Shown: piece by piece, positions 2,039-45,351 of the stretch
How positions within the stretch are numbered: position 1 is the first letter of the stretch
Layout of the letters: every line of letters begins with the position of its first letter
Program-made: the position numbers and the translations under genes
DNA from: Hemiscyllium ocellatum
Taxonomy: Eukaryota
Length of the DNA stretch: 64,000 nt
Direction: 5' to 3'
Assembly (NCBI RefSeq): GCF_020745735.1
Contig: NC_083426.1
Coordinates: 39,866,001 to 39,930,000, forward strand
Notes under the pieces: model-generated
What the model was told of the DNA's origin: nothing
The model's input: only the letters and a program-made list of their open reading frames with translations
The model's database searches: none

Positions 2039-2667
2039 AAAAGATGCTATTTGTTGTTGATAGAATGTGACCATAAATTTGGAATAAGATGCCTTTTCCA
2101 TAAGACACCACAGACTTAATTTAGTACATACCTGATCAACCAACAGAATGGTGTGGGGCATTCAGAAGTGAGGATGTCCCTTTGACACCATCAATTGCTC
2201 CCTGGCCTGGGCTGAGTGACAGCCTTATCTTGCAGCAGAGGTTGCCTTGTAGATAGGGTTCTATGCTGGTAAGGGTGCGGTGATTAGGATGCCTGAGAAT
2301 GCCAGAGTTGGCAGCTGGCAGAGTGGGCATAACATCAGAGGCTTTGGGGCAAAGGTTTCAGAGGTAGCCATGTTGGGCTAGAGTTGGCCCATTTGCACAG
2401 GTTTGGGTGGTGTTTGCTTAGGCTTGGGTGGTGTTTGTTCAGGCAAATCCAGCTGCAAAGGCATATCCCTATTGGATATGTCAAGCCTGTCACCTGGATG
2501 TAGCTGCTGGACTTTATGAGACTTGTGGTTAGGTGCCTGACCATTTTCTAGCTTTTACTAATGGTCTAGAGACTGATTTGGCCAGAATTTGGACATTTTA
2601 GATTTTAAATCAAAGAGAGTTCCATTGCGGAGGTGGTAATTTTGCCCCTATTTCCCTGATTGGTTGA

Positions 2668-2872
2668 ACCAGTGTTGGACTGGGCTGGACAAAGTTAAAA
2701 ACCACTCAACACCAGGGTATAGTCCAACAGGTTTATTTGGAAGCACTAGCTTTTGAAGTGCTGTTTCTTCATCAGGTGAACTTTGATTTCTCTCCACAGA
2801 TGCTGCTAGACCTGCTGAGCTTTTCCAGCAATTTGTTTTTGTTTCTGATTTACAGCATCTGCAGTTCCCTCA
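2668..2872. mobile_element. Adjacent decayed PLE terminal fragments (family B on -, family A-like on +)
   Basis: 2690-2779 matches the arm of the 34034-34950 element; 2793-2870 resembles the gatgctgcc...cagcatctgcag terminus. Confidence 0.65.
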
Positions 2873-3066
2873 GTTTATCTCCAACTTCACATTGTGCTTA
2901 GCAAATTTCCAAACACAGTGTTAGAAATTGGGGGTAAAATACAAAAAGCTGGTCAAAGAGCATTTGTGGAGAGCACAACCCATCGCTATTTTGTGTTCAC
3001 TGTTTCTCTCCATGAGGAAAATGTACAAGTCTGAAAGACCATCAATCCTTATTGGAACAGTGGTGC

Positions 3067-3365: not shown

Positions 3366-3420
3366 TTTTAGATAAGAGAAATGTGGGTCAGGAATCTGAA
3401 TAGGGAATGAATGGGAACTG

Positions 3421-3833
3421 AAAAGGTGTTGCTGGAAAAGCTCAGCAGGTCAGGCAGCATCCAAGGAACAGGAAATTCAACGTTTCGGGCATAAGCCTTA
3501 TGCCTGAAACGTCGAATTTCCTATTCCTTGGATGCTGCCTGACCTGCTGCGATTTTCCAGCAACACATTTTCAGCTCTGATCTCCAGCATCTGCAGTCCT
3601 CACTTTCTCAATGAATGGGAACTGAAAAGGTGTTGCTGGAAAAGCGCAGCAGGTCAGGCAGCATCCAAGGAACAGGAAATTCAATGTTTCGGGCATTGGC
3701 CCTTCATCAGGAATGAAGGGCTTATGCCTGAAACGTCGAATTTCCTATTCCTTGGATGCTGCCTGACCTGCTGCGATTTTCCAGCAACACATTTTCAGCT
3801 CTGATCTCCAGCATCTGCAGACCTCACTTTCTC
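3421..3833. mobile_element. Two tandem fold-back PLE derivatives (family A) with triplicated 15-bp flank
   Basis: Each unit is an inverted repeat; aatgaatgggaactg occurs at 3406-3420, 3610-3624 and 3834-3848. Confidence 0.85.
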
Positions 3834-4447
3834 AATGAATGGGAACTGCCAGAGTTTCTGGTTTCGCTGAGTAATCAGGGCAGATAGTGGGGTAAAGAGT
3901 CCATTCTGCAAAAGGAAGGAATTCTAATTAAAAAGGTTGCATTCTGAGTAACAAGGCCTCAACAGCACTTGGATTTGTAGGATGGAGAGGAAGCCTGCGA
4001 AGGCTGTGTCCTAGATCTCTCACTCTTATCTGGAGGTGATGCTCTGAGACCAAAAAGACTGTGGTGAGGTTCGGTTAGAAGGACAAGAGCAAAGAGACTA
4101 GTCTTGCAAGTGGCTCCTAATGTCAGCAACACGGAGGTCTTGTTTATTCAATGTGGAGACAGGGCATCAAGGAGACAAGGACCTTGGGAAGGTGGGAAAG
4201 GTGAGAAGTGTAATATTTTCAGGCCCCAAGTCCAAAACTCTGCCCATGCCAACATTCATTTACACAGCACTTCTCAGATGAACACAGCGTACAGCTCCAC
4301 TCATTCTCTCCTCGCACCTCCTCACATCCCCATCTGAACAGTCAACACTCACTCACCCTCATCTTATTGTCCTTTTGCACTCATGCCTTCGTCACCCTGC
4401 ACAAACGTCATCTTCGCCAAACAAGCCATTGCAAACACTAGCACCTC

Positions 4448-4686
4448 AGTGAAAGTGAAGACTGCAGAAGCTGGAGATCAGAAGTCTAGATTAGAGTGGT
4501 GCTGGAAATGCACAGCAGGTCAGGCAGCATCCAAGGAGCAGGAAAATTGATGTTTCCGGCAAAAACCCTTCATCAGAAAAGCCATTCCTTCCTGATGAAG
4601 GGCTTTTGCCCGAAACGTCGATTTTACTGCTCCTCTGATGCTGCCTGACATCCTGTGTTTTACCAGCACCACTCTAATCTAGACCC
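4448..4686. mobile_element. Fold-back PLE derivative (family A), 16-bp TSD
   Basis: Inverted arms; caaacactagcacctc at 4432-4447 and 4687-4702. Confidence 0.88.
4589..4622 (+). ncRNA. Minimal type-I hammerhead ribozyme motif (family A), weak stem I
   Basis: uuc-CUGAUGA-a-GGGC-uuuu-GCCC-GAAA-C-GUC-gau; core intact, only 2 bp of stem I. Confidence 0.6.
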
Positions 4687-5451
4687 CAAACACTAGCACC
4701 TCTCTACTCTCTCTCTTTGTAGAAGAGAGCACATAGCTTTGGGCAAAGGCAGAAGCCTGAATGGAATGTGGTTGGAAATTAAGGAGGGAGTTGAAGTGGG
4801 AGACACTGAGAGGGGGAGGGGCAATGTGTCCTGCTACTGACAGACCACTTGATGATTTTTGGGAAGGTGGTCTTGTTCCAGAAAGTGTCAGCAGTGACCG
4901 GCTGTGATAGCCTGCGCCTCCTGAGGCATAAGGTGCTCAGACAGAGCTCATCCTCTACCCTTTAGTACAATGGTGGGATCTCACCTCCCTCTAGCTGAAT
5001 CTCTGTATCGATCCCCTCTGCACTGTGGAGGATCACATACTGAGGGACAAACAGATGGTGCTGTTGCTCTTACTGTTGCTGTGCAGTTGACTGTGGCATG
5101 GATTCTGCTCTTGATCCTCAAATGAGGGGGAAGGTGAAGCTACGTAAAGTGTTCCCACGGTGTAGTGCACACAATTAAATAGGAAAATGCTGGACAAGGG
5201 AAGTGACTTTTCAACATTGACAACACCTGACAAACAATGATAGCAATTTCAGACACAGAAAGTACTTTGGATAGCAGCCTCACACCAATCCATGTCTGGG
5301 ACTCTTCAACTACACTGATCAAAACCTCTCTACTCCATTAGTTTTACTCAAAAGTTATTCCTGCTGTCACTCACCTCAGTGATCCTAGGGAATTTTACTT
5401 AACAGTTCAGGAAATAGGTATAGTAGCAGGAAAACCAAGAATTAAAATGGC

Positions 5452-18593: not shown

Positions 18594-19286
18594 ATATTTC
18601 AGCAGAGTCTTTTGCATCCAAGCCCCAGGTTCTGATAAGACCAACAGTTTTCAGAAAACCCTTAAAAGGTTCCAATTGAACTTTGCTGAGGAATGCAGAA
18701 GCCCGATTGTTGATGAAGGGCGAGTTACTTGAATCTTTCTAATTTCTTGGTTACAACTTATTTCTTGGTTACAACTTGCATAATTAGAGATACAAAAACT
18801 GTTAAAAATTTTAAAAAACAAATTCAAAACTAATTGAATAAAATAAGAATGGAGGGTCAGGTGACATGCTGTGGGAGCTGGTGGACCCCATTGTGGTTCC
18901 CAGCAACCATGTCTGTAGTAAATGTTGGTTGCTGGAAGATTGTTGGCTCAGAGTTGATGATCTGGAGTCTGAGCTTCAAACATTGTGAGATATCAGGGAG
19001 GAGGGGAGAGTTACACCCCTTAGACTAACTAACTCAAGTTCAGCCAGTGGTCAGGGACAGGAGGGTGTGGCTAAGAGTGAGGCAGGCAGACGGATTCAGG
19101 AGCCTCAGCCCCTGACTTTGTCCAATAAATTCAAGAGCGCTGCTCCCTCTGTGGACGGGAATGGAGACTGCAGGGAGGATGAGCCGAATGACTGTAGCAT
19201 TGTGGTGCAGGGAGCCATTCAAGTAGGGGTAGAAAAGGGAAATGTTGTTGTAATTGGGGATAGTATAGTTAGAGGCATAGACGCTG

Positions 19287-20964: not shown

Positions 20965-23900
20965 TTAAACCCTTGTGAAGAGCTCTAGCAAGCCTCCCGC
21001 CCGGGATATTGGTACAACACCAGTTCAGGTACAATCTGTTCTCCCTGGGATCTGTACAAGGAGGACAGGTTGCGCCTGAACTGGTGGTGTACCAATATCC
21101 TGGGCGGGAGGTTTGCTAGAGCTCTTTGCAAAGGTTTGGCAGGGGGATGAGAACCGGAGCTACCAATCAGAGGATGGAGTGGCTGGTGAGCAGGCAGATA
21201 CAGTGTGCAAAGAGTCTGTGATGAAGGATAGACAGCTGATAGGGCAAAGTTGCAGTCAGTGTGAGGAGTTGAAGTGCATCTAATTTAATGCAAGAAATCT
21301 CAGGAACAAGGGTGATGAACTTAAAAACATGGATCAATACTTGGAGCAATGATGTTGTGGCCATTACAGAGACTTGGATATCACAGGAGCAGGGATGGTT
21401 GTTGGATGATCTGGGGTTTAGATGTTTCATAAGGAATAGGGAGGGAGGTAAAAGAGGTGGCGGAGTGGCATTGCTACTCCGGGATAGTATCAAAGCTGCA
21501 GAAAGGGAGGTTGTCGAGTAGGGTTTGTCTATTGAGTCATTATGGGTGGAAGTCAGAAATAGGAAAGGAATTGGAGTTTTCTATAAACTCCCCATTAGCA
21601 ACAGAGATATGGTGGAGCAGATTGGGAGAGAGATTTTGAAAGGTGCAGAAGTAACAGGGTTGTGGTCATGGGTGACTTCAACTTCCCTAATATCGATGGG
21701 AACCTCCTTAGTGCAAATAGTTTGAATGGAGCAGATTTTGTCAGGTATGTCCAGGAAGGATTCCTGACTCAATATGTAGATAGGCTGACTACAGGGGAGG
21801 CCATATTGGATTTGTTGCTTAGCAACAAACCAGGTCAAATGTCAGATCTTTCAGTGGGAGAGCATTTTGGTGATAGTGATCACAACTCCCTAACCTTTAC
21901 TATGTCATGCAGTGGGATAGGAGCAGATGGCATGGAAAGTATTTAATTGGGAGAGGAGGAATTATAATGTTATTGGCAGGAACTGTGCAGCATAAATTGG
22001 GAATAGCTATTCTCAGGGAAGTGCATGACAAAAAAATGTTTTCTGTTTAGGAAGCACTTGCTTTGAGTGCTGGATAGGTTTGTCCCACTGAGGCAAGGAA
22101 GGGATGTAGGGTGAAGGAACCTTGGATGACAAGAGATGTGGAGCATCTAGTTAAGAGGAAGAAGGAAGCTTACTTAAGGTTGAGGAAGCAAGGATCAGAC
22201 AGGGCTCTAAAGGGTTGCAAGGTAGCCAGAAAGGAACTGAAGAATGGACTTAGGAGAGCTATAGGGGCATTATAAATCCTTGCCGGGTAGGATTAAGGAA
22301 ATTTCAAAGATGTTTTACATTTATATGAGGAACACGAGGATGGCCAGAGTGAGGTAGACAGATCAGGAATAGTGGAGGGAACTTGTGCCTGGAGTGGGAG
22401 GAGTTGGGGAGGTCCTTAATGAATACTTTACTTCAGTATTCACTAGGGAGCGGGACCTTGTTGTTTATGAGGACAGTGTGAAACAGACTGATATGCTCGA
22501 ATAGATTGATGTTAAGAAGGACAATGTGCTAGAAAGTGTGGAAAACACTAGGATAGATAAGTCCCCTGGGCCAGGTGGGATATGCCCAAGCTTTCTACAG
22601 GAAGCGAGTGAAGAGATTGCTGTGCCTTTGACAATGATCTTTGCATCCTCACCATCCACTGGAGTAATACCAGATGCTTGGAGTGTGGCAAATGTTATTC
22701 CTTTATTCAAGAAAGGGAATAGGGATAACCCTGAGAATAAGGTAAAGATGAGGAATGTAGATGCTGGAAACCCATGTCTGGATTAGAGTGGTGCTGGAAA
22801 AGCACAGCAGGTCAGGCAGCATCCAAGGAGCAGGAAAACTGACATTTCAGGCAAAGGGCTTTTGCCCGAATCGTTGATTTTCCTGCTTCTTGGATGCTGC
22901 CTGACCTGCTGTGCTTTTCCAGCACCACTCTAATCCATAACCCTGGGAATTACAGACCAGGCAATCTTACATCTGTGGTGGGCAAATTATTGGAGAGGAT
23001 TCTGAGAGACAGGATTTATGATTATTTGGAAAAGCACAGATTGATTAGAGATAGTCTGTATGGCTTTGTGAGGAACAGGTCATGCCTCACAAGCCTTATT
23101 GAATTCTTTGAGGATGGGACAAAACACATTGATGAAGGTAAAGCAGTAGACGTGGTGTATATGGATTTTAGCAAGGTGTTTGACAAGGTTCCTCATGGTA
23201 GGTTCATTCAGAAAATAAGGAGGCACGGGATACAGGGAAATCTGGCTGTCTGGATACAGAATTAGCTGGCCCATATAAGACAGAGGGTAATAGTAGGTGG
23301 AAAGTATTCAGCCTGGAGCTGGGTGACCAGTGGTGTTCCACAGGGATCTGTTCTGGAACCTCTGCGCTTTGTGATTTTTATAAATGACTTGGATGAGGAA
23401 GTGGAAGGATGGGTTAGTAAGTTTGCTGATGACACAAAGGTTAGTGGAGTTGTGGATAGTGTGGAGGGCTGTTTTAGGTTGCAATGGGACATTGACAGGA
23501 TGCAGAACTGGGCTGAGAAGTGGCAGATAGAGTTCAACCTGGAAAAGTGTGAAGTGATTCATTCTGGAAAGTTGAATTTGAATGCAGATTATTAAAGGCA
23601 GGATTCTTGGCAGTGTGGAGGAACAGAGGGATCTTAGGGTCCATGTCCATAGATCCCTCAAAGTTGCCACCTAAGTTGATAGGGTTGTTAAGAAAGCGTA
23701 TGTTGTGTTGGCTTTCATTAGCAGGGGGATTGAATTTAAGAGCTGTGAGGTTATGCTGCAGCTGTATAAAGCCCTGGTTAGACTACACTTGGAATATTGT
23801 GTTCAGTTCTGGTCGCTTTGTTATAGGAAAGATGTGGAAGCTTTAGAGAGGATGCAGAGGAGATTTATCAGGATGCTGCCTGGACTGGAGGGCATGTCTT

Positions 23901-26429: not shown

Positions 26430-29400
26430 AGAGCAGGTAAGGGCTGTTTGGTAGTGGCTGCTTGAAGGCTCGGTGACGTTTGTTTAATGGTTTAAATTTG
26501 AATTATTTTTTAAAAAAAAGCGCGGAGCGCACCCGGAAGCTGGTGTAGCGCAAGCTTACCTGGGTAAGTTGTTTTCCTATAAAGGTGCGCAGGAGAGGAA
26601 CCCGAGGCACTACAAGGGTAGAGCCTCCCACCCGCCCTCCTCCTCTCACCTAATAATAAGACCCGTTGTGGTAAGCAGGTAAGTGCTGCATTTTGCTTAT
26701 TCTCGTGTTTAGACCTAGTTTTTTTTAAAGGTTACTTTTAGAGGGATGGCAGTGAAGACAGTGCAATGTTCCTCTTGCAACATGTATAAGGTGAGGGATG
26801 CCATGGTCGTCCCTGCTGATTACACTTGCAGGAAGTGCACCCTTCTCCAGCTCCTCCAAGACCGTGTTAGGGAACTGGAGCTGGAGTGGGATGAACTTAG
26901 GATCATTCGGGAGGCAGAGGGGGTCATAGATCGGAGCTTTAGGGAAGTAGTAACTCCAAAGATTGCAGACAGATGGGTGACAGTGAGGAGGACTGGGAGG
27001 AAGCTGCCAGTGCAGAGACCCCCTGCGGCCGTTCCCCTCAAAAACAAGTATACCGTTTTGGATACTTATCGGGGGGACAACTTACCAGGGGTAAGAATGG
27101 GGTTCAGGCCTCTGGCACAGAGCCTATCCCCGTTGCTCAGAAGGGAAGGGTGGAGAAGAGCAAAGCAATAGTTATTGGGGACTCGATAGTTCGGGGCACA
27201 GATAGGCGGTTTTGTGGGGGTGAGAGAAACTCACGATTGGTACGTTGCCTCCCAGGTACAAGGGTACGTGACATCTCTGATCGTGTTTCCCGGGTCCTTA
27301 AGGGGGAGGGGGAGCAGTCCGAAGTCGTGGTCCACATTGGCACCAACGACATAGGTAGGAAGAGGGATGAGGATGTTAGGCAGGCTTTTAGGGAGCTAGG
27401 TTGGAAGCTCAGAATTAGAACAAACAGAGATGTTGTCTCTGGTTTGTTACCCGTGCCACGTGATAGAGAGTCGAGGAATAGGGAGAGAGAGCAGTTAAAT
27501 GCGTGGCTACAGGAATGGTGCAGGAGGGAGGGATTCCAGTTTCTGGATAACTGGGGTTCTTTCTGGGGAAGGTGGGACCTCTATAAACAGGATGGTCTAC
27601 ACCTGAACCTGAGGGGCACCAGTATCCTTGGGGGGAGGTTTGATAGTGCTCTTTCGGGGGGTTTAAACTAACTCTGCAGGGGCATGGGAACCTAGACTGT
27701 AGTTTTAGGGTGCAGGACCTCGAGTGTAGGGAGGTTAGGAACCAGGCATCAATCTCGATGGAGGGTGCCTGTAAACAGGAAGGTGGCTTCAAGTGTGTAT
27801 ACTTCAATGCGAGAAGTATACGAAATAAGGCAGGTGAACTTGCAGCGTTGGTTGGTACTTGGGAGTTCGATATTGTGGCTATTACGGAGACATGGGTAGA
27901 ACAGGGACAGGATTGGTTGTTGCAGGTTCCAGGGTTTAAATGTTTTAGTAGGGTCAGAGGTGGGGGTAAAAGAGGGGGAGGTGTGGCATTGCTTGTCAAA
28001 GATAGTATTACAGCAGTGGAAAGGACGATGGATGAAGACTCGCCACCTGAGGTAGTTTGGGCTGAGCTTAGAAATAGGAAAGGTGAGGTCACCCTGTTAG
28101 GAGTTTTCCAAAGGCCTCCTAATAGTCCTAGAGACGTAGAAGAAAGGATTGCGAGGATGATTCAGAAGAAGAGTGAAAGTAATAGGGTGGTTGTTATGGG
28201 GGACTTTAACTTTCCAGATATTGACTGGGAAAGCTATAGCTCGAGTACGTTAGATGGGCCGGTGTTTGTCCAATGTGTGCAGGAGGGTTTCCTGACAAAA
28301 TGTGTAGACAGGCCAACAAGAGGTGAGGCCATACTGGATTTGGTTCTGGGTAACAAACCAGGCCAGGTGCTAGAATTGGAGGTAGGTGAACACTTTGGGG
28401 ACAGTGACCACAATTCGGTGACTTTTACTCTAGTGATGGAGAGGGATAAGTGTGCACTGCAGGGCAAGAGTTATAGCTGGGGGCAGGAAAATTATGATGC
28501 GGTGAGGCATGACTTAAGATGCGTGGCTTGGAAAAGTAGGCTTCAAGGGAAGGGTGCAATCGATATGTGGAGCTTGTTCAACTGAGTGTCCTTGATAAGT
28601 ATGTACCTGTCAGGCAGGGAGGAAAGAGTCGTGTGAGGGAGCCGTGGTTTAATAAGGAATTGGAATCCCTTGTTAAAGGGAAGAGGGCGGCCTATGTAAA
28701 GATGAGGCGTGAACGTTCAATTGAGGCGATTGAGAGTTATAAGGTAGCCAGGAAGGATCTAAAGAGAGAGCTAAGAGCAGCAAGGAGGGGACATGAAAAG
28801 TCCTTGGTTGATAGGATTAGGGAAAACCCAAAGGCTTTCTATCGGTATGTCAAGAATAAAAGAATGACTAGGGTAGGAATAGGTCCCGTCAAAGATAGTA
28901 GTGGGAAGTTGCGTGTGGAGGCTGAAGAAATTGGGGATACACTGAATGAATACTTTTCGTCAGTATTCACTCAGGAACAGGACATTGATGCCGATGTGAA
29001 TATTGAGTCACAATTAATTAGAATGGATGACTTTGAGATATGTAGGGAAGAGGTGTTGGAAATTCTGGAAAGGGTGAACATAGATAAGTCCCCTGGGCCT
29101 GATGGCATTTATCCTAGGATTCTCTGGGAAGCAAGGGAGGAGATTGCAGAGCCATTGGCCTTGATTTTTATGTCCTCGTTGTCTACAGGAATAGTGCCAG
29201 AAGACTGGAGGATAGCAAATGTGGTTCCCTTGTTCAAGAAGGGGAGTAGGGATAACCCTAGTAACTATAGGCCGGTGAGTCTCACTTCTGTTGTGGGCAA
29301 AGTCTTAGAGAGAATTGTAAGGGATAGGATTTATGAACATCTGGATAGGAATAATGTGATCAAGGATAGTCAGCATGGTTTTGTGAAGGGCAGGTCGTGC

Positions 29401-30628
29401 CTCACAAACCTTATTGAATTCTTTGAGAAGGTGACTAAGGAGGTGGACGAGGGTAAAGCGGTTGATGTGGTGTATATGGATTTTAGTAAGGCGTTTGATA
29501 AGTTTCCCCATGGTAGGCTACTGCAAAAAATACGGAGGTATGGCATTGAGGGGGAGTTGGAGGTTTGGATTAGGAATTGGCTGGCTAGAAGAAGACAGAG
29601 GGTAGTAGTTGATGGTAAAGGTTCATCTTGGAGTGCAGTTACCAGCGGTGTTCCGCAAGGATCTGTTTTGGGACCATTGCTGTTTGTCATTTTTATAAAT
29701 GAACTGGAGGAGGGGCTAGAAGGTTGGGTGAGCAAGTTTGCGGATGATACGAAAGTCGGTGGAGTTGTTGACAGTGAGGAAGGATGTGGCAGGTAACAGC
29801 GGGATATAGATAAGCTGCAGAGCTGGGCAGAAAGGTGGCAAATGGAGTTCAATGTCGCTAAGTGTGAAGTGATTCACTTTGGTATAGAGTAACAAGAAGA
29901 TGGAGTACTGGGCTAATGGTTGGATACTTGGTAGTGTGGATGAGCAGAGGGATCTTGGTGTCCATGTACACAGATCTCTGAAAGTTGCCACCCAGGTAAA
30001 TAGTGCTGTGAAGAAGGCATATGGTGTACTGGCTTTTATTTGTAGAGGAATTGAGTTCCGGAGTCCTGAGGTCATGTTGCAGTTGTATAAGATTCTGGTG
30101 CAGCCGCATCTGGAGTATTGTGTGCAGTTTTGGTCGCCATACTATAGGAAGGATGTGGAGGCACTGGAACGGGTGCAGAGGAGGTTTACTAGGATGTTGC
30201 CTGGTATGGTAGGAAGATCGTATGAGGAAAGGCTGAGGCACTTGGGGCTGTTTTCATTGGAGAAAAGAAGGTTTAGGGGAGATTTGATAGAGGTGTACAA
30301 GATGATTAGGGGTTTAGATAGGGTTGACCATGAGAACCTTTTTCCACGTATGGAGTCAGATATTACGAGGGGGCATAGCTTTAAATTAAGGGGTGGTAGG
30401 TATAGGACAGATGTTAGGGGTAGATTCTTTACTTAGCGAGTCGTGGGTTCATGGAATGCCCTGTCAGTAACAGTGGTGGACTTTCCCTCTTCATGGGCAT
30501 TTAAATGGGCATTGGATAGGCATATGGAGGAAAGTGGGCTAGTGTAGGTTAGGTGGGCTTGGATTGGCGCAACATCGAGGGCCGAAGGGCCTGTACTGCG
30601 CTGTATTTTTCTATGTTCTATGTTCTAT
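26430..30628 (+). mobile_element. Near full-length, young CR1 LINE 'C' (ORF1 zinc finger/coiled coil/SGNH esterase; ORF2 APE-RT)
   Basis: ORF1 26746-27671 (CSSC..CRKC, GDSIVRG, HIGTND, DGLHL); ORF2 27710-30550 in three long ORF pieces; (ttctatg)n tail; about five lesions; 5' boundary approximate. Confidence 0.93.
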
Positions 30629-31529: not shown

Positions 31530-32263
31530 GAACATAGAACATAGGACAGTACAGCACAGAACAGGCCCTTCAGCCCACGATGTTGTGCCGACCATTGATC
31601 CTCATGTATGCACCCTCAAATTTCTGTGACCATATGCATGTCCCGTAGTCTCTTAAATGTCCCCAATGACCTTGCTTCCACAACTGCTGCTGGCAACGCA
31701 TTCCATGCTCTCACAACACTCTGTGTAAAGAACCCGCCTCTGACATCCCCTCTACACTTTCCTCCAACCAGCTTAAAACTATGACCCCTCGTGTCAGTCA
31801 TTTCTGCCCTGGGAAATAGTCTCTGGCTATCAACTCTATCTATGCCTCTCATTATCTTGTATACCTCAATTAGGTCCCCTCTCCTCCTCCTTTTCTCCAA
31901 TGAAAAAAGTCTGAGCTCAATCAATCTCCCTTCATAAGATAAGCCCTCCAGTCCAGGCAGCATCCTGGTAAACCTCCTCTGAACCCTCTCCAAAGCATCC
32001 ACATCTTTCCTATAATATGGCGACCAGAACTGGATGCAGTATTCCAAGTGCGGTCTAACCAATGTTTTATACAGCTGCAACAAGATCTCACGACTCTTAA
32101 ACTCAATCCCCCTGTTAATGAAAGCCAAAACACCATATGCTTTCTTAACAACCCTGTCCACTTGGGTGGCCATTTTAAGGGATCTGTGTACCTGCACACC
32201 AAGATCCCTCTGTTCCTCCACACTGCCAAGAATCCTATCCTTAATCCTGTACTCAGCTTTCAA
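31530..32263 (-). mobile_element. 5'-truncated CR1 LINE with uninterrupted ORF2 C-terminus
   Basis: 215-aa ORF 31616..32263 (RPHLEYC, LERVQRR, TRGH..KL, WNALP); (gaacata)n tail. Confidence 0.92.
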
Positions 32264-32709: not shown

Positions 32710-33631
32710 AGTAAAAAATGAGGTCTGCAGATGCTGGAGATCACAGCTGCAAATGTGTTGCTGGTCAAAGCACAGCAGGTTAGGCAGCATCTCAGGAATA
32801 GAGAATTCGACGTTTCGAGCATGAGCCCTTCATCAGGAATAAGAGAGAGAGAGCCAAGCAGGCTGAGATAAAAGGTAGGGAGGAGGGACTAGGGGGAGGG
32901 GCGATGGAGGTGGGATAGGTGGAAGGAGGTCAAGGCGAGGGTGATAGGCCGGAGTGGGGTGGGGGCGGAGAGGTCAGGAAGAGGATTGCAGGTTAGGAGG
33001 GCGGTGCTGAGTTGAGGGAACCGACTGAGACAAGGTGGGGGGAGGGGAAATGAGGAAGCTGGAGAAATCTGAATTCATACCTTGTGGTTGGAGGGTTCCC
33101 AGGCGGAAGATGAGGCGCTCCTCCTCCAGCCGTCGTGTAGTTGTGTTCTGCCGGTGGAGGAGTCCAAGGACCTGCATGTCCTCGGTGCAGTGGGAGGGGG
33201 AGTTAAAGTGTTGAGCCACGGGGTGATTGGGTTGGTTGGTTCGGGCGGCCCAGAGGTGTTCTCTGAAGCGTTCCGCAAGTAAGCGGCCTGTCTCACCAAT
33301 ATAGAGGAGGCCACATCGGGTGCAGCGGATGCAATAGATGATGTGTGTGGAGGTACAGGTGAACTTGTGGCGGATATGGAAGGATCCCTTGGGGCCTTGG
33401 AGGGAAGTGAGTGTGGAGGTGTGGGCGCAAGTTTTACATTTCCTGCGGTTGCAGGGGAAGGTGCCGGGGGTGGAGGTTGGGTTGGTGGGGGGTGTGGATC
33501 TGACAAGGGAGTCACGAAGGGAGTGGTCCTTGCGGAACGCTGATAGGGGAGGGGAGGGAAATATATCCTTGGTGGTGGGGTCCGTTTGGAGGTGGCGGAA
33601 TTGGCGGCGGATAATACGTTGTATGCGCAGG
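32710..33631 (-). mobile_element. 5'-truncated Penelope-like retroelement, family A, with intact GIY-YIG endonuclease frame and 3' pLTR
   Basis: ORF 32974..33702: CNRRKCKTC, IIYCIRC..C.LLYIGETGR, RFREH, VAQHFN, GTLQPQGMN; 3' region matches the fold-back arms. Confidence 0.93.
32805..32840 (-). ncRNA. Minimal type-I hammerhead ribozyme motif in the PLE 3' terminal repeat (family A)
   Basis: AUUC-CUGAUGA-a-GGGC-ucau-GCUC-GAAA-C-GUC/GAAU: 4-bp stem I, 4-bp stem II with one G-U, palindromic ACGU in place of stem III. Confidence 0.75.
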
Positions 33632-34086
33632 TTTTGAATGACATGGTATGCATTAAATATATGAAGCAACTGAGTAAAGTAACCCTTGCTTTGAAAGGCC
33701 AAGTGCAGTGAGAGATGGCCTTGATGAACAGAATGTGGGTGACCTTCCCTTCGTTTTTGACCAGGACTGTTCCCTCTCCCTCAATCAAACTTTGTCTCCA
33801 ATGTCATGCCTAGCTCAGGGGGCAAGTGACCCCAAGATAATTTTGCCATCTTCTTTTTTGATGTTCACATCCTGAATAAATACTCACTCCCTTCCAAAAA
33901 GAAAATATACCATCTGTGTTCAAACTATTTGAAAATAATCTACATAATAACAGTCATGACAGCTCAGACTAATTATTTATTTGTGAAGCACTGGAGATTT
34001 GCTGAGACACGTTAAGTGGCCTATAATCAAGTAAAAAAAAAGTCACACAACACCAGGTTATAGTCCAACAGGTTTAATTGGAAGCA

Positions 34087-34121
34087 CACTAGCTTTCGGA
34101 GCGACGCTCCTTCATCAGGTG
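34087..34121 (-). ncRNA. Minimal type-I hammerhead ribozyme motif (family B, left arm)
   Basis: CAC-CUGAUGA-a-GGAGC-guc-GCUCC-GAAA-G-CUA/GUG; palindromic AGCU. Confidence 0.72.
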
Positions 34122-34274
34122 ATAGTGGAGGGCTCGATCGTAACACAGAATTTATAGCAAAAATTTGCAGTGTTATGTAACTGAAATTATACATTGAAAA
34201 ATTGATTGTCTGTTAAGCATTTCATCTGTTAGAATACAGTGATAGTTTCACTCCTTTCATGTGTAAATCACAAA

Positions 34275-34435
34275 ACCCACACACCCACACCCCACACACA
34301 CCCTTTTAGACACACACACTCCCACGCAGACTTAAGACACTCTGCACCCCCCCCCCCCACACACACACACACACACACAACCCCCACCCCAAACAGACAG
34401 ACAGACACAGACAGACAAAGACCCACATGCACACA
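34275..34435 (+). repeat. Imperfect (CA)n/(CAGA)n microsatellite inside the family B element
   Basis: Visible CA and CAGA runs plus a poly-C tract. Confidence 0.85.
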
Positions 34436-34827
34436 TATGTTTTGTGGGGTGAATTTGTATTGCACTTTGCTCAAAATTGCATACATTCATGTAGAACTCG
34501 GAGCTCAAAAACTGCAGGAATTTATGTAAAACACTGTTATCTCACTTATTAGATTAGAATCAATCTAAACATCAGGTCATAGACAGAAAACACAGAGGGC
34601 TAACACCTTCAACATATTGCCTAGCTATCACCATTGTTAGCAGCTAACCCGAGAATGTAACTTTAAAAAGAAGGGTTTTGTGATTTACACATAAAAGAAG
34701 TGAAACTATCACTGTATTCTAACAGATGAAAGGCTTAACAGACAATCAATTTTTCAATGTATAATTTCAGTTACATCACACTGCAAATTTTTGCTATAAA
34801 TTCTGTTACGATCGAGCCCTCCACAAT

Positions 34828-34862
34828 CACCTGATGAAGGAGCATCGCTCCGAAAGCTAGTG
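34828..34862 (+). ncRNA. Minimal type-I hammerhead ribozyme motif (family B, right arm)
   Basis: CAC-CUGAUGA-a-GGAGC-auc-GCUCC-GAAA-G-CUA/GUG; differs from the left-arm copy only in loop II. Confidence 0.72.
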
Positions 34863-35044
34863 TGCTTCCAATTAAACCTGTTGGACTATAACCTGGTGTT
34901 GTGTGATTTTTAACTTTGTACACCCCAGTCCAACACCGGCATCTCCAAATTATAATCAAGTATTTCTCATGAAGGCGACATTACAGGATTGCTACATCCA
35001 TTAGTACCACTAGAGGACACCAGAGATCTGAGTTCTTCACATAC

Positions 35045-35170
35045 CCACACAATCTTTTTTATTCCAGTGTAGTTTGTAACCACCGTTGGGACAAGAGCAT
35101 TGATAGCTTCCCAGTGTATTAACACAGCCGTGCTTACAGCCACCATGGTTCATGCTGCATTCATCGATAT
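35045..35170 (-). CDS. SCUBE3: SCUBE3-like exon, EGF repeat 9 ([42 protein letters not shown])
   Basis: 126 nt between ctttttcAG and GTatg, phase 1-1; LHWNKKDC motif; [10 protein letters not shown] has the SCUBE3-type length as recalled (human CPAGQGRLHW). Confidence 0.9.
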
Positions 35171-35256
35171 CTGAAAAAGGCACAGGCAAAATTAGTTGGC
35201 TTATATTAAGCAAGTCTATTCTGGCACAAGCAACTTTGTCGTTTGTATTTTTTCAG

Positions 35257-35333
35257 TGGAACACTTCATGACTTTGTGTGTCGTACTTAAGCAGGGGCCA
35301 TGCTAATCTTCTTTGTACCATTCCAACTTTAGT
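35257..35333 (-). pseudogene. 5'-truncated U6 snRNA retrocopy
   Basis: 77-nt ungapped match to recalled U6 nt 24-100 with 12 mismatches by manual count; AGATTAGCATGGCCCCTGC intact, ACAGAGA box mutated to ACAAAGA; short A-run follows. Confidence 0.88.
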
Positions 35334-35523
35334 TTCAGGTCTCAGCTATTGTAATGTTAGTATGACAGCAGCTCTGGGTATCTCTTGCATTTAGATTCCC
35401 CAAAAGCAAGGTCCTGATGACAGGTGACTGTATGATCTTACAAACATGGCTATGACTGGTTCTATGCTGCATAAGTGGGTTCCACATCCTCAAATGCTTG
35501 ATGTGGAAAGATCTGGATTCTCT

Positions 35524-43621: not shown

Positions 43622-45351
43622 GATATTAAGTCTAGAAGGCTGTAAAGTGTCTAGTCTGAAGATGAGACGTTGCTCTTCCAGTTTGCACTGTGATTCACTG
43701 GATTACTGCAGCATTCCGAAGACAGACACGTGGGCACGCGAGCAGGGTGCTGTGTTAAAACGACTGGCTACAGGAACGTCAGGGTCCTGCTTGAGCACAG
43801 ACTGGAGGTGTTCTGCAAAGTGGTCACCCAGTCTGTGTTTGGTTTCTCCAATGTAAAGTAGGCCACCTGGCTGACTTATTCTCTCAGTGAACAAATTCTC
43901 CTTTGATTCACCTCACTTCTGCCAATTCAAAGGATTGGCTATGGACATCCACATGGGTCCCAGTTCTGCCTGCCTCTTTTTGGGACTGGTGGAACAATCC
44001 TTGTTCCAGTCTTACACTGGACCCCTCTCACAATGCTTTTGTTGTACATTGATGACTGTTTCAGTGCCACTTCATGCTCCCGTCAGGACTTTGAAAACTT
44101 CATTAATTTTGCCTCCAATTTCCACCCCTCTGTAACTTTCACATCATCCATTTTGGACACTTCCCTTCCTTTTGTTGACCTCTCTGCCTCCATTTCCACT
44201 GCCATCCACTTCAAAGCCACTGACTCCCATAGCTACCTTCACTACAGCTCGTCACACCCTATGTCCTGCAAGGACTCCATCCCATTTCCCAGTTCTTTTG
44301 CCTACGTCGTATTTGTTCAGATGATACCACCTTCCAAAGCAGCGCTGCTGACAAGGCTTGTTTTTCCATGACTGTGGTTTCCCACCCACTGTGGTTGACA
44401 GGGGCCTCAACCACATCCGGCCTATCACTCGTGCTTCCACCCTTACCCCTTCACATCACTCACAATAGCATGATTGGGTTCCCCTTGTCCTCACTTTTCC
44501 TCCCACCAGCCTCTGCATTCAAATGATCATTCTCCACCATTTCAGACAACTCCAGCAGAACGCCACCACCAAACACATCTTCCCCTCAATTCCCCAGTCT
44601 GCATTTGCAGGAATTGTTCCTTCCAGATACCCTAGTCCATTCCACAATCACCAGCACCACACCCCTCTCTCCACAGCAACTTTCCATATAACTGCAGAAG
44701 GTGCAACATTTGCCCCTTCACCTCTCCCTGCTCACCGTCAAAGGGCCCAGACTGTCGTTCCAGGTGAAGCAGCATTTCACCTGTACCTCCTCCAATCCTG
44801 TGTATTGTATTCGCTGCACCCAATGTGGCCTACTCTACATTGGAGAAACCAAATACAGCTTTGTGTGACCACTCTGTGGAACACGTCTGGTCTGTGCTCA
44901 CGCAGGACCCTGACATTCCCATAGCCGGGCATTTTATCACAGCACCCTGCTGGCATGCCCATGTGTTTGTCCTTGGCATGCTGCAATGTTCCAGTGAATC
45001 ACAGCGCAAACTGGAGGAACAACATCTCAGACTACACACATTACAGCCTTCTGGACTAATTATTGAGTTAACTGTCAACATTTCTTCCTTTTCTTTTAAC
45101 TTGTTAGCATGTCCTCCCCCTCACCCCCTTCCCACTTACTGTCCTTTCTAGTCTGGCAGGAGACACACTGTTGTGCTGCCATTCTCACATTCCGATCACC
45201 CAATCTGAACTATCAACATGTTTTCTTCACTGGACCCTCCACCCACTACCCCCAGCCCCACCATTTCACTGCCACCCCTCAGCTATAGCATAAATGCTGT
45301 CCCCTCCCCACTTTACTTCAGCTTTGATGAAGCGTCACTTAAACTCAAAAC
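43622..45351 (+). mobile_element. Decayed Penelope-like element (family C) with inverted 5' segment
   Basis: 43880-45060 forward: GLAM..HMGPS.ACLF, YIDDC, LPFVDL, KATDSHSYL, GIY-YIG pieces; 43622-43865 is an inverted second copy of the GIY-YIG region (LLYIGETK); decayed hammerhead-like motif at 45324-45351. Confidence 0.85.

Follow-up and report, generated by a model that had tools for sequence, protein, structure and literature searches.

Minimal type-I hammerhead motifs in the 3' termini of Penelope-like element insertions of Hemiscyllium ocellatum

Hammerhead motifs and Penelope-like insertions in the window

The DNA analyzed here, referred to as the window, is a 64,000-nucleotide stretch of the Hemiscyllium ocellatum genome (NC_083426.1, positions 39,866,001 to 39,930,000). 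Its center carries minimal hammerhead ribozyme (min-HHR) motifs of two families, A and B, within insertions of Penelope-like elements (PLEs). The features of this region are as follows.

32714-32804, minus strand: 3' tail of the A1 copy, long version (17-copy A-type alignment; alifold and fold)
32805-32840, minus strand: family A min-HHR, copy A1 (direct reading, descriptor, and the covariance model R2)
32974-33640, minus strand: Penelope-like ORF remnant with GIY-YIG, in the ORF 32974-33702 (ORF, Pfam, homologues, and Atlas neighbours)
34022-34033, plus strand: left target-site duplication, 12 bp, TATAATCAAGTA
34034-34950, no single strand: ORF-less Penelope-type insertion, family B (inverted arms and target-site duplication)
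34087-34121, minus strand: second intact family B min-HHR, copy B2 (descriptor; R2, 40.7 bits)
34828-34862, plus strand: family B min-HHR, copy B1 (direct reading, descriptor, and R2)
34951-34962, plus strand: right target-site duplication, 12 bp, TATAATCAAGTA

Read along the minus strand from 32840 to 32805, A1 is AUUC CUGAUGA A GGGC ucau GCUC GAAA CGUC / GAAU (the slash marks the predicted cleavage site), with stem I AUUC/GAAU, stem II GGGC/GCUC, a bulged A, and the palindrome ACGU; cleavage is predicted at GUC, with C17 at position 32809. On the plus strand B1 is CAC CUGAUGA A GGAGC auc GCUCC GAAA GCUA / GUG, with stem I CAC/GUG, stem II GGAGC/GCUCC, the same bulged A, the palindrome AGCU, and a predicted cleavage site CUA with A17 at 34859. 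The letters and coordinates of A1 and B1 agree with those in a preliminary description of this DNA, from which B2 is absent; B2 differs from B1 by a single loop base and lies in the opposite arm of a 240-nt inverted repeat. The catalytic core (C3-U4-G5-A6-N7-G8-A9 together with G12-A13-A14) is exact in A1, B1, and B2. Helix II is loop-closed and begins with G10.1-C11.1 in A1 and B1, and the open helix I is 4 bp long with a GUC triplet at the NUH position in A1 and 3 bp long with CUA in B1 and B2. Loop 3 is absent, and it is positions 15.1-15.2-16.2-16.1 that make up the 4-nt palindrome. The unpaired A between A9 and G10.1, present in 9 of 9 window copies and in all 5 distinct motifs of the relatives described below, was earlier regarded as noncanonical, but it is an already known and typical min-HHR trait (PMC4209133).

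The simple pattern CTGATGA-N8-30-GAAA occurs nine times in the 64-kb window against 2.0 expected, with eight of the nine matches starting with CTGATGAAG. A strict RNAmotif-like min-HHR descriptor (core, 0- or 1-nt bulge, stem II, GAAA, and N-N-U-H) gives six matches versus 0.06 in 500 dinucleotide-preserving shuffles. The full descriptor, which adds a palindromic helix III and sets minimum lengths of 3 bp for stem I and 4 bp for stem II, gives three matches (A1, B1, and B2) and none in 500 shuffles. Allowing one core mismatch yields four matches versus 0.025 expected, the sole addition being an older A copy at 3679-3714. Rfam reports no hammerhead in the window, either at the gathering score or at E values up to 10, and its output at those thresholds is limited to a U6-like match and a noise match. 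We attribute the silence of Rfam on min-HHRs to its models requiring helix III.

A1 sits 134 nt downstream of the stop codon of the ORF remnant, which encodes a C-X4-C-X2-C linker and a GIY-YIG endonuclease domain (Pfam GIY-YIG, 22.7 bits; cut-off, 22.6). The ORF is 5' truncated and the endonuclease part alone survives beside A1; no reverse transcriptase (RT) of Penelope type is found in the 64-kb window. A phmmer search of 1.84 billion representatives with the A1-linked protein returned 7635 homologues, and the long ones (800 to 950 aa) match it C-terminally and bear RVT_1 together with a GIY-YIG domain at their C terminus. An RT with a C-terminal GIY-YIG is the canonical architecture of endonuclease-positive Penelope elements, and A1 therefore most likely marks the 3' end of a Penelope-like element that has lost its 5' part. 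The A1 tail includes a terminal extension of ~35 nt and a long-range helix, GAGAUGCUG/CAGCAUCU, predicted by both alifold and fold.

There are five additional A-type copies of the motif in the window (3679-3714, 4545-4580, 4588-4623, 53415-53450, and 61306-61341), and the following insertions carry four of them.

3406-3835, no single strand: two tandemly duplicated head-to-head A-type insertions
4448-4686, no single strand: head-to-head A-type insertion with hammerheads at 4545-4580 (minus strand) and 4588-4623 (plus strand)
61087-61434, plus strand: A-type Penelope 3' fragment with the hammerhead at 61306-61341, its palindrome decayed to ACAU

One of the two insertions at 3406-3835 has a complete hammerhead (3679-3714, minus strand) and the other is joined within stem II, and the insertion at 4448-4686 is flanked by a 16-bp duplication, CAAACACTAGCACCTC. 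More head-to-head A-type pairs are located at 22734-22936 and 56666-56850, and a solo copy is at 54459-54544. Every inverted A-type pair has one long arm, with ~35 nt of extra tail, and one short arm. The palindrome has changed from ACGU to ACAU by CpG decay in three of the six A copies, and many short A-type copies are without part of the core.

Covariation between families and among relatives

The preliminary description held that every paired position differs between the two families. This is true of five of the nine comparable pairs, which are changed on both sides between A1 and B1 (2.2-1.2, 2.3-1.3, 10.3-11.3, 10.4-11.4, and 15.2-16.2), but three pairs are identical (2.1-1.1, C-G; 10.1-11.1, G-C; and 15.1-16.1, A-U), and at 10.2-11.2 at most one side differs. 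Because two families are too few for statistics, we fetched relatives, namely 12 loci whose products are full-length relatives of the A1 protein, selected by protein homology and blind to RNA; one of these (L004) is without flanking DNA. With a descriptor that allows either C3-G8 or U3-A8 and requires neither bulge nor palindrome, the 12 loci contain seven min-HHRs (five of them distinct) versus 0.005 by chance. Each of the seven lies outside the ORF on the coding strand and carries the bulged A and a 4-nt palindrome; among the 12 loci, L001, L002, L008, and L011/L012 have no descriptor match. Two of the relatives' motifs have a U3-A8 core covariation, as was previously reported for Cercyon elements (PMC4209133). 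In one locus (L005), identical U3-A8 min-HHRs with the palindrome AAUU flank the ORF at 1120-1156 and 5071-5107, both on the plus strand and spaced 3951 nt apart. This direct pair corresponds to a pseudo-LTR (pLTR) arrangement, and a cis dimer could form there. A third, different min-HHR is present in the same locus near the contig end (5236-5274, minus strand).

The covariance model R2, trained on B1 and four foreign motifs and on no sequence of family A, recovers A copies in the window with E values from 4e-7 to 1e-3 (A1, 27.1 bits, E 1.2e-4). An A-only model, R1, is dominated by A primary sequence and reaches B only at E ~6; a candidate that it proposed at 18700-18749 (E 0.08) looks like chance and was set aside. 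In an alignment built to fit stems I and II of the model, with the C3-G8 and helix III pairs lying outside the model structure, standard pairs occupy 92.4% of the cells versus 63.5% when shuffled, both sides change in 10 of 11 pairs versus a shuffled mean of 7.0, and the covariation score is 0.854 versus 0.269; neither the pairing nor the score is reached in any of 500 shuffles. Sliding the partners by one to three columns leaves 44% or less paired, and in helix II of the 12 distinct motifs 97.9% of the cells are paired. MAFFT alignments of A and B were excluded from the pair counts, as they place the length difference outside the loop and leave GAAA or stem II mis-registered. The covariation noted in the preliminary description is strong by these measures. 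A point against the hammerhead reading is that within family A the proximal tail (identity 0.82) comes close to the core in conservation, with the values for the core raised by the choice of copies on the basis of that core.

These data bear on whether the matches are simply chance resemblances to a short hammerhead consensus lying inside repeats, as might be suspected of a motif with only ~13 fixed bases, for which Rfam is silent and folds are not unusually stable. We give this essentially no credence, as the full form is missing from every shuffle, the same architecture recurs beside PLE ORFs that were fetched blind to RNA, and the cross-family covariance-model matches are significant; with the covariation added, the chance reading is refuted.

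A third family, C, is represented by an old fragment.

44510-45351, plus strand: old frameshifted Penelope-like 3' fragment, family C, with a putative decayed hammerhead relic at 45324-45351

Global alignment places UUUGAUGAAGCG...CUCAAAAC of 44510-45351 opposite CCUGAUGAAGGG...CUCGAAAC of A1, and the distance of 45324-45351 from the decayed endonuclease-coding region upstream of it is as expected. It departs from the consensus with U3, A12, and a broken stem II, and it is undetected by R2 (E >5). The earlier assignment of these nucleotides to a third-family relic has positional support only; the motif alone is not significant, and a decayed hammerhead homologue is plausible.

Insertion scars, family B, and the inner ends of the arms

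Target-site duplications of 12, 16, 9, and 14 bp are present in the window at the B insertion and at A-type insertions; A1, A5, A6, the 56666-56850 pair, and the junction of B3 (see below) with an A arm yielded none. The published PLE signature is an inverted 5'-truncated copy together with a 30- to 40-bp tail at one end only (PMC8557442), and the scars in the window, seen in the B insertion and in four A-type insertions, match it. The PLE protein cleaves and extends both DNA strands and there are two adjacent RT start sites (PMC11167929), which accounts for the one-sided tail and the inverted copies.

The family B insertion is 917 bp long, has no ORF, and is bounded on both sides by the perfect 12-bp duplication. 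Its arms (34038-34278, minus strand, and 34673-34911, plus strand) are inverted and 97% complementary, with the right arm longer by a tail of ~40 nt at its outer end. B1 and B2 occupy one inverted arm each, and a single event produced the whole insertion. The 394-nt center between the arms (34279-34672) is nonpalindromic and starts with a CA-/C-rich microsatellite-like run; a second copy of it is absent within the window, and it may be either part of the B element or captured sequence.

An ORF-less, hammerhead-bearing insertion raises the question of whether family B is a non-LTR retrozyme, in which a tandem hammerhead repeat releases a small circular RNA, and non-LTR retrozymes derived from PLE pLTRs have been reported in one chondrichthyan genome (bioRxiv 10.64898/2026.07.22.740005). 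This is very unlikely, however, as no direct tandem repeat of B was found, A1 is solitary, and B1 and B2 are on opposite strands, so that there is no transcript with two sense copies and no unit between two cleavage sites; the inverted B orientation contradicts a retrozyme at this locus. The family B locus is better read as a Penelope-type insertion.

A further B copy, B3, is found at some distance from the others.

2744-2778, minus strand: decayed family B hammerhead B3, abutting the A-type tail arm 2780-2880 (R2, 23.5 bits)

In B3, G12 is changed to A and stem II is eroded. The junction at 2666-2880 consists of a decayed B arm (2666-2779, minus strand) head-to-head with an A tail arm (2780-2880, plus strand), and it could reflect either two adjacent insertions or one event with two template RNAs.

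The inner (5') ends of the short arms are clustered at the motif. In 12 of 12 short A-type arms and in the B3 arm they fall in the stretch that runs from 13 nt upstream of C3 to A14, and at 3418-3609 the join between the two arms lies precisely within the stem II hairpin. We considered whether the motif is kept in PLE termini mainly for a role other than self-cleavage, for example as a structural landmark that sets the inner end of short insertions; it could bind a protein, stop the reverse transcriptase, link two RNAs into a dimer, or anneal one cDNA to another. Several published observations point the same way: hammerhead catalytic mutants left in vitro insertion unchanged, RNA-seq reads with ends at the cleavage site were absent, and protein was required for cleavage (PMC11167929), and Naiad PLEs thrive without a hammerhead (PMC8557442). 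We nevertheless regard such a role as improbable, as unrelated families keep the core letter-exact, down to a double change from C3-G8 to U3-A8, which is hard to explain without catalysis. The arms are also few and include two tandemly duplicated pairs, and those of family B extend 157 nt past the motif on its upstream side. The two motifs at the head-to-head B-arm/A-arm junction could not pair, and the inner-end clustering would follow equally well from a short nonautonomous master RNA with its start at the motif.

A narrower version of this proposal, in which the min-HHR marks the point where both cDNAs of a twin-primed Penelope insertion end and become joined, is more doubtful still. The protein-bound motif would act as an RT block or, alternatively, the stem II hairpin and palindrome would provide the first self-complementary annealing site for identical cDNAs. 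If true, this would explain the ends of all of the short A-type arms and the stem II junction.

Helix III, the dimer model, and known hammerheads

The interpretation that we favor, and hold to be very probably correct, is that these are minimal type-I hammerhead motifs in the 3'-terminal, pseudo-LTR-derived part of PLE insertions, with the local copies being inert relics and dimer cleavage by master elements taken from the literature. Motif, PLE ORFs, insertion scars, and relatives all agree with the preliminary reading of minimal type-I hammerheads of Penelope-like elements.

A15.1 and U16.1 are two bases apart, leaving no loop, and a single copy therefore cannot close helix III. As previously suggested for this DNA, and as in PMC4209133, helix III is predicted to form only between two copies, through 4 bp of the 4-nt palindrome. 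In active master elements, two copies would pair via the palindrome and with swapped stem I strands to give a double hammerhead, which would cleave after position 17, weakly alone and probably aided by the element's protein. The swap of stem I between the partners is a feature that we infer from the double-hammerhead topology; with it, stem I (AUUC versus GUG) would exclude A/B heterodimers, and so would the palindrome. That pairing might be confined to one family by its own palindrome is a logically sound but weak proposal. With A15.1 and U16.1 fixed there are four possible palindromes, all four of which are present among the relatives, and ACGU is common to A, L003, and L009, and AGCU to B and L007; the palindrome is a weak and redundant family label, because few exist and families share them.

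Thermodynamic models (RNAcofold and explicit evaluation) are either uninformative or do not favor the dimer for A and B. Nearest-neighbour energies for the double hammerhead versus two monomers are -9.7 versus -16.8 kcal/mol for A and -16.3 versus -18.2 kcal/mol for B, and single-copy folds are not better than shuffles (z -1.3 to -1.6). The unfavorable dimer energies agree with the low in vitro activity of min-HHRs and with protein-assisted cleavage.

Within the 64 kb, every intact motif is without a same-strand, same-family partner, and the older copies have broken pairs and a CpG-decayed palindrome; for these reasons the local copies are most likely inert relics.

We note that the A tail (32714-32808, minus strand) and the B tail (34860-34950, plus strand), otherwise unrelated, both end near CCRGCAUCU. 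In the B tail a predicted long-range helix, GUUGGACU/AGUCCAAC, joins the optional terminal extension to the proximal tail, and the A tail is arranged likewise. As modeled, these tail helices may be an RT initiation structure; the A and B tail folds are not significantly more stable than shuffles.

The min-HHR was defined by Cervera and De la Pena in 2014, who also proposed and tested the dimer (PMC4209133). Their motifs include families with compensatory changes, a nucleotide between A9 and G10.1, G10.1-C11.1, and a palindromic 15.2-16.2; they also occur as pairs on opposite strands, 100 to 700 bp apart, and they cleave weakly as dimers, with low in vitro activity (PMC4209133). Passages in PMC6765202 and PMC7761336 credit dimer cleavage to Lunse, Weinberg and Breaker 2017. 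The loop-less helix III, dimer, bulge, palindrome, and covarying families described here have thus been known since 2014. The PLE min-HHRs of PMC4209133 and those in the window share the type-I topology, an open helix I of 3 to 4 bp, no helix III loop, the A15.1-N-N-U16.1 palindrome, the unpaired A9/G10.1 nucleotide, G10.1-C11.1, location in PLE terminal repeats, compensatory families, and opposite-strand pairs. Helix II is 4 to 5 bp here versus 7 to 8 bp in the Schistosoma min-HHR families, and there is otherwise no structural difference; families A and B may individually be absent from earlier listings.

The canonical metazoan type-I hammerheads of the newt and Schistosoma satellites and of the non-LTR retrozymes share the catalytic core with the motifs here, and they have a weak helix III and dimer-dependent cleavage (Forster 1988, as cited in PMC4209133). 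They have a 6-bp helix I, loop-loop tertiary contacts, a looped helix III of 1 to 2 bp, and direct tandem arrays, unlike the motifs here, which lack loop 3 and tertiary-contact loops and do not form a tandem array. The PAc Poseidon element of Anolis (PMC11167929) has a hammerhead in the pLTR; its protein cleaves and extends both DNA strands, and two RT starts give an optional 30- to 40-nt tail, in keeping with the long and short arms in the window. The PAc ORF starts within stem II, whereas here the motif lies past the stop codon and the AUG in CUGAUGA opens a frame of only 13 to 17 codons.

The locus provides a clean, controlled example of a published motif class and carries little weight as a discovery. 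Since min-HHRs are unflagged by Rfam, thousands of copies in the genome would go unannotated without a dedicated model, for which R2 is a workable seed. The open biology that it touches is the role of the hammerhead in Penelope transposition, and it is on this role that the inner ends of the insertions bear.

The window has several other features. A U6 snRNA match at 35250-35354 (minus strand) scores 59.2 bits, above the Rfam gathering score, with a mismatched 5' stem and an A-run replacing the terminal U-run, and it is probably a retropseudogene. Consecutive ORFs at 26973-30436 (plus strand) match a GDSL-type esterase, an AP-type endonuclease, and an RT (Pfam), which looks like a largely intact non-LTR element of CR1/L2-like type, with related 3' fragments at 31616-32263 (minus strand) and after 45352. 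A short ORF at 35037-35213 (minus strand) has a calcium-binding EGF domain (EGF_CA, FXa_inhibition) and is probably a host-gene exon, and the repeats here would therefore be intronic.
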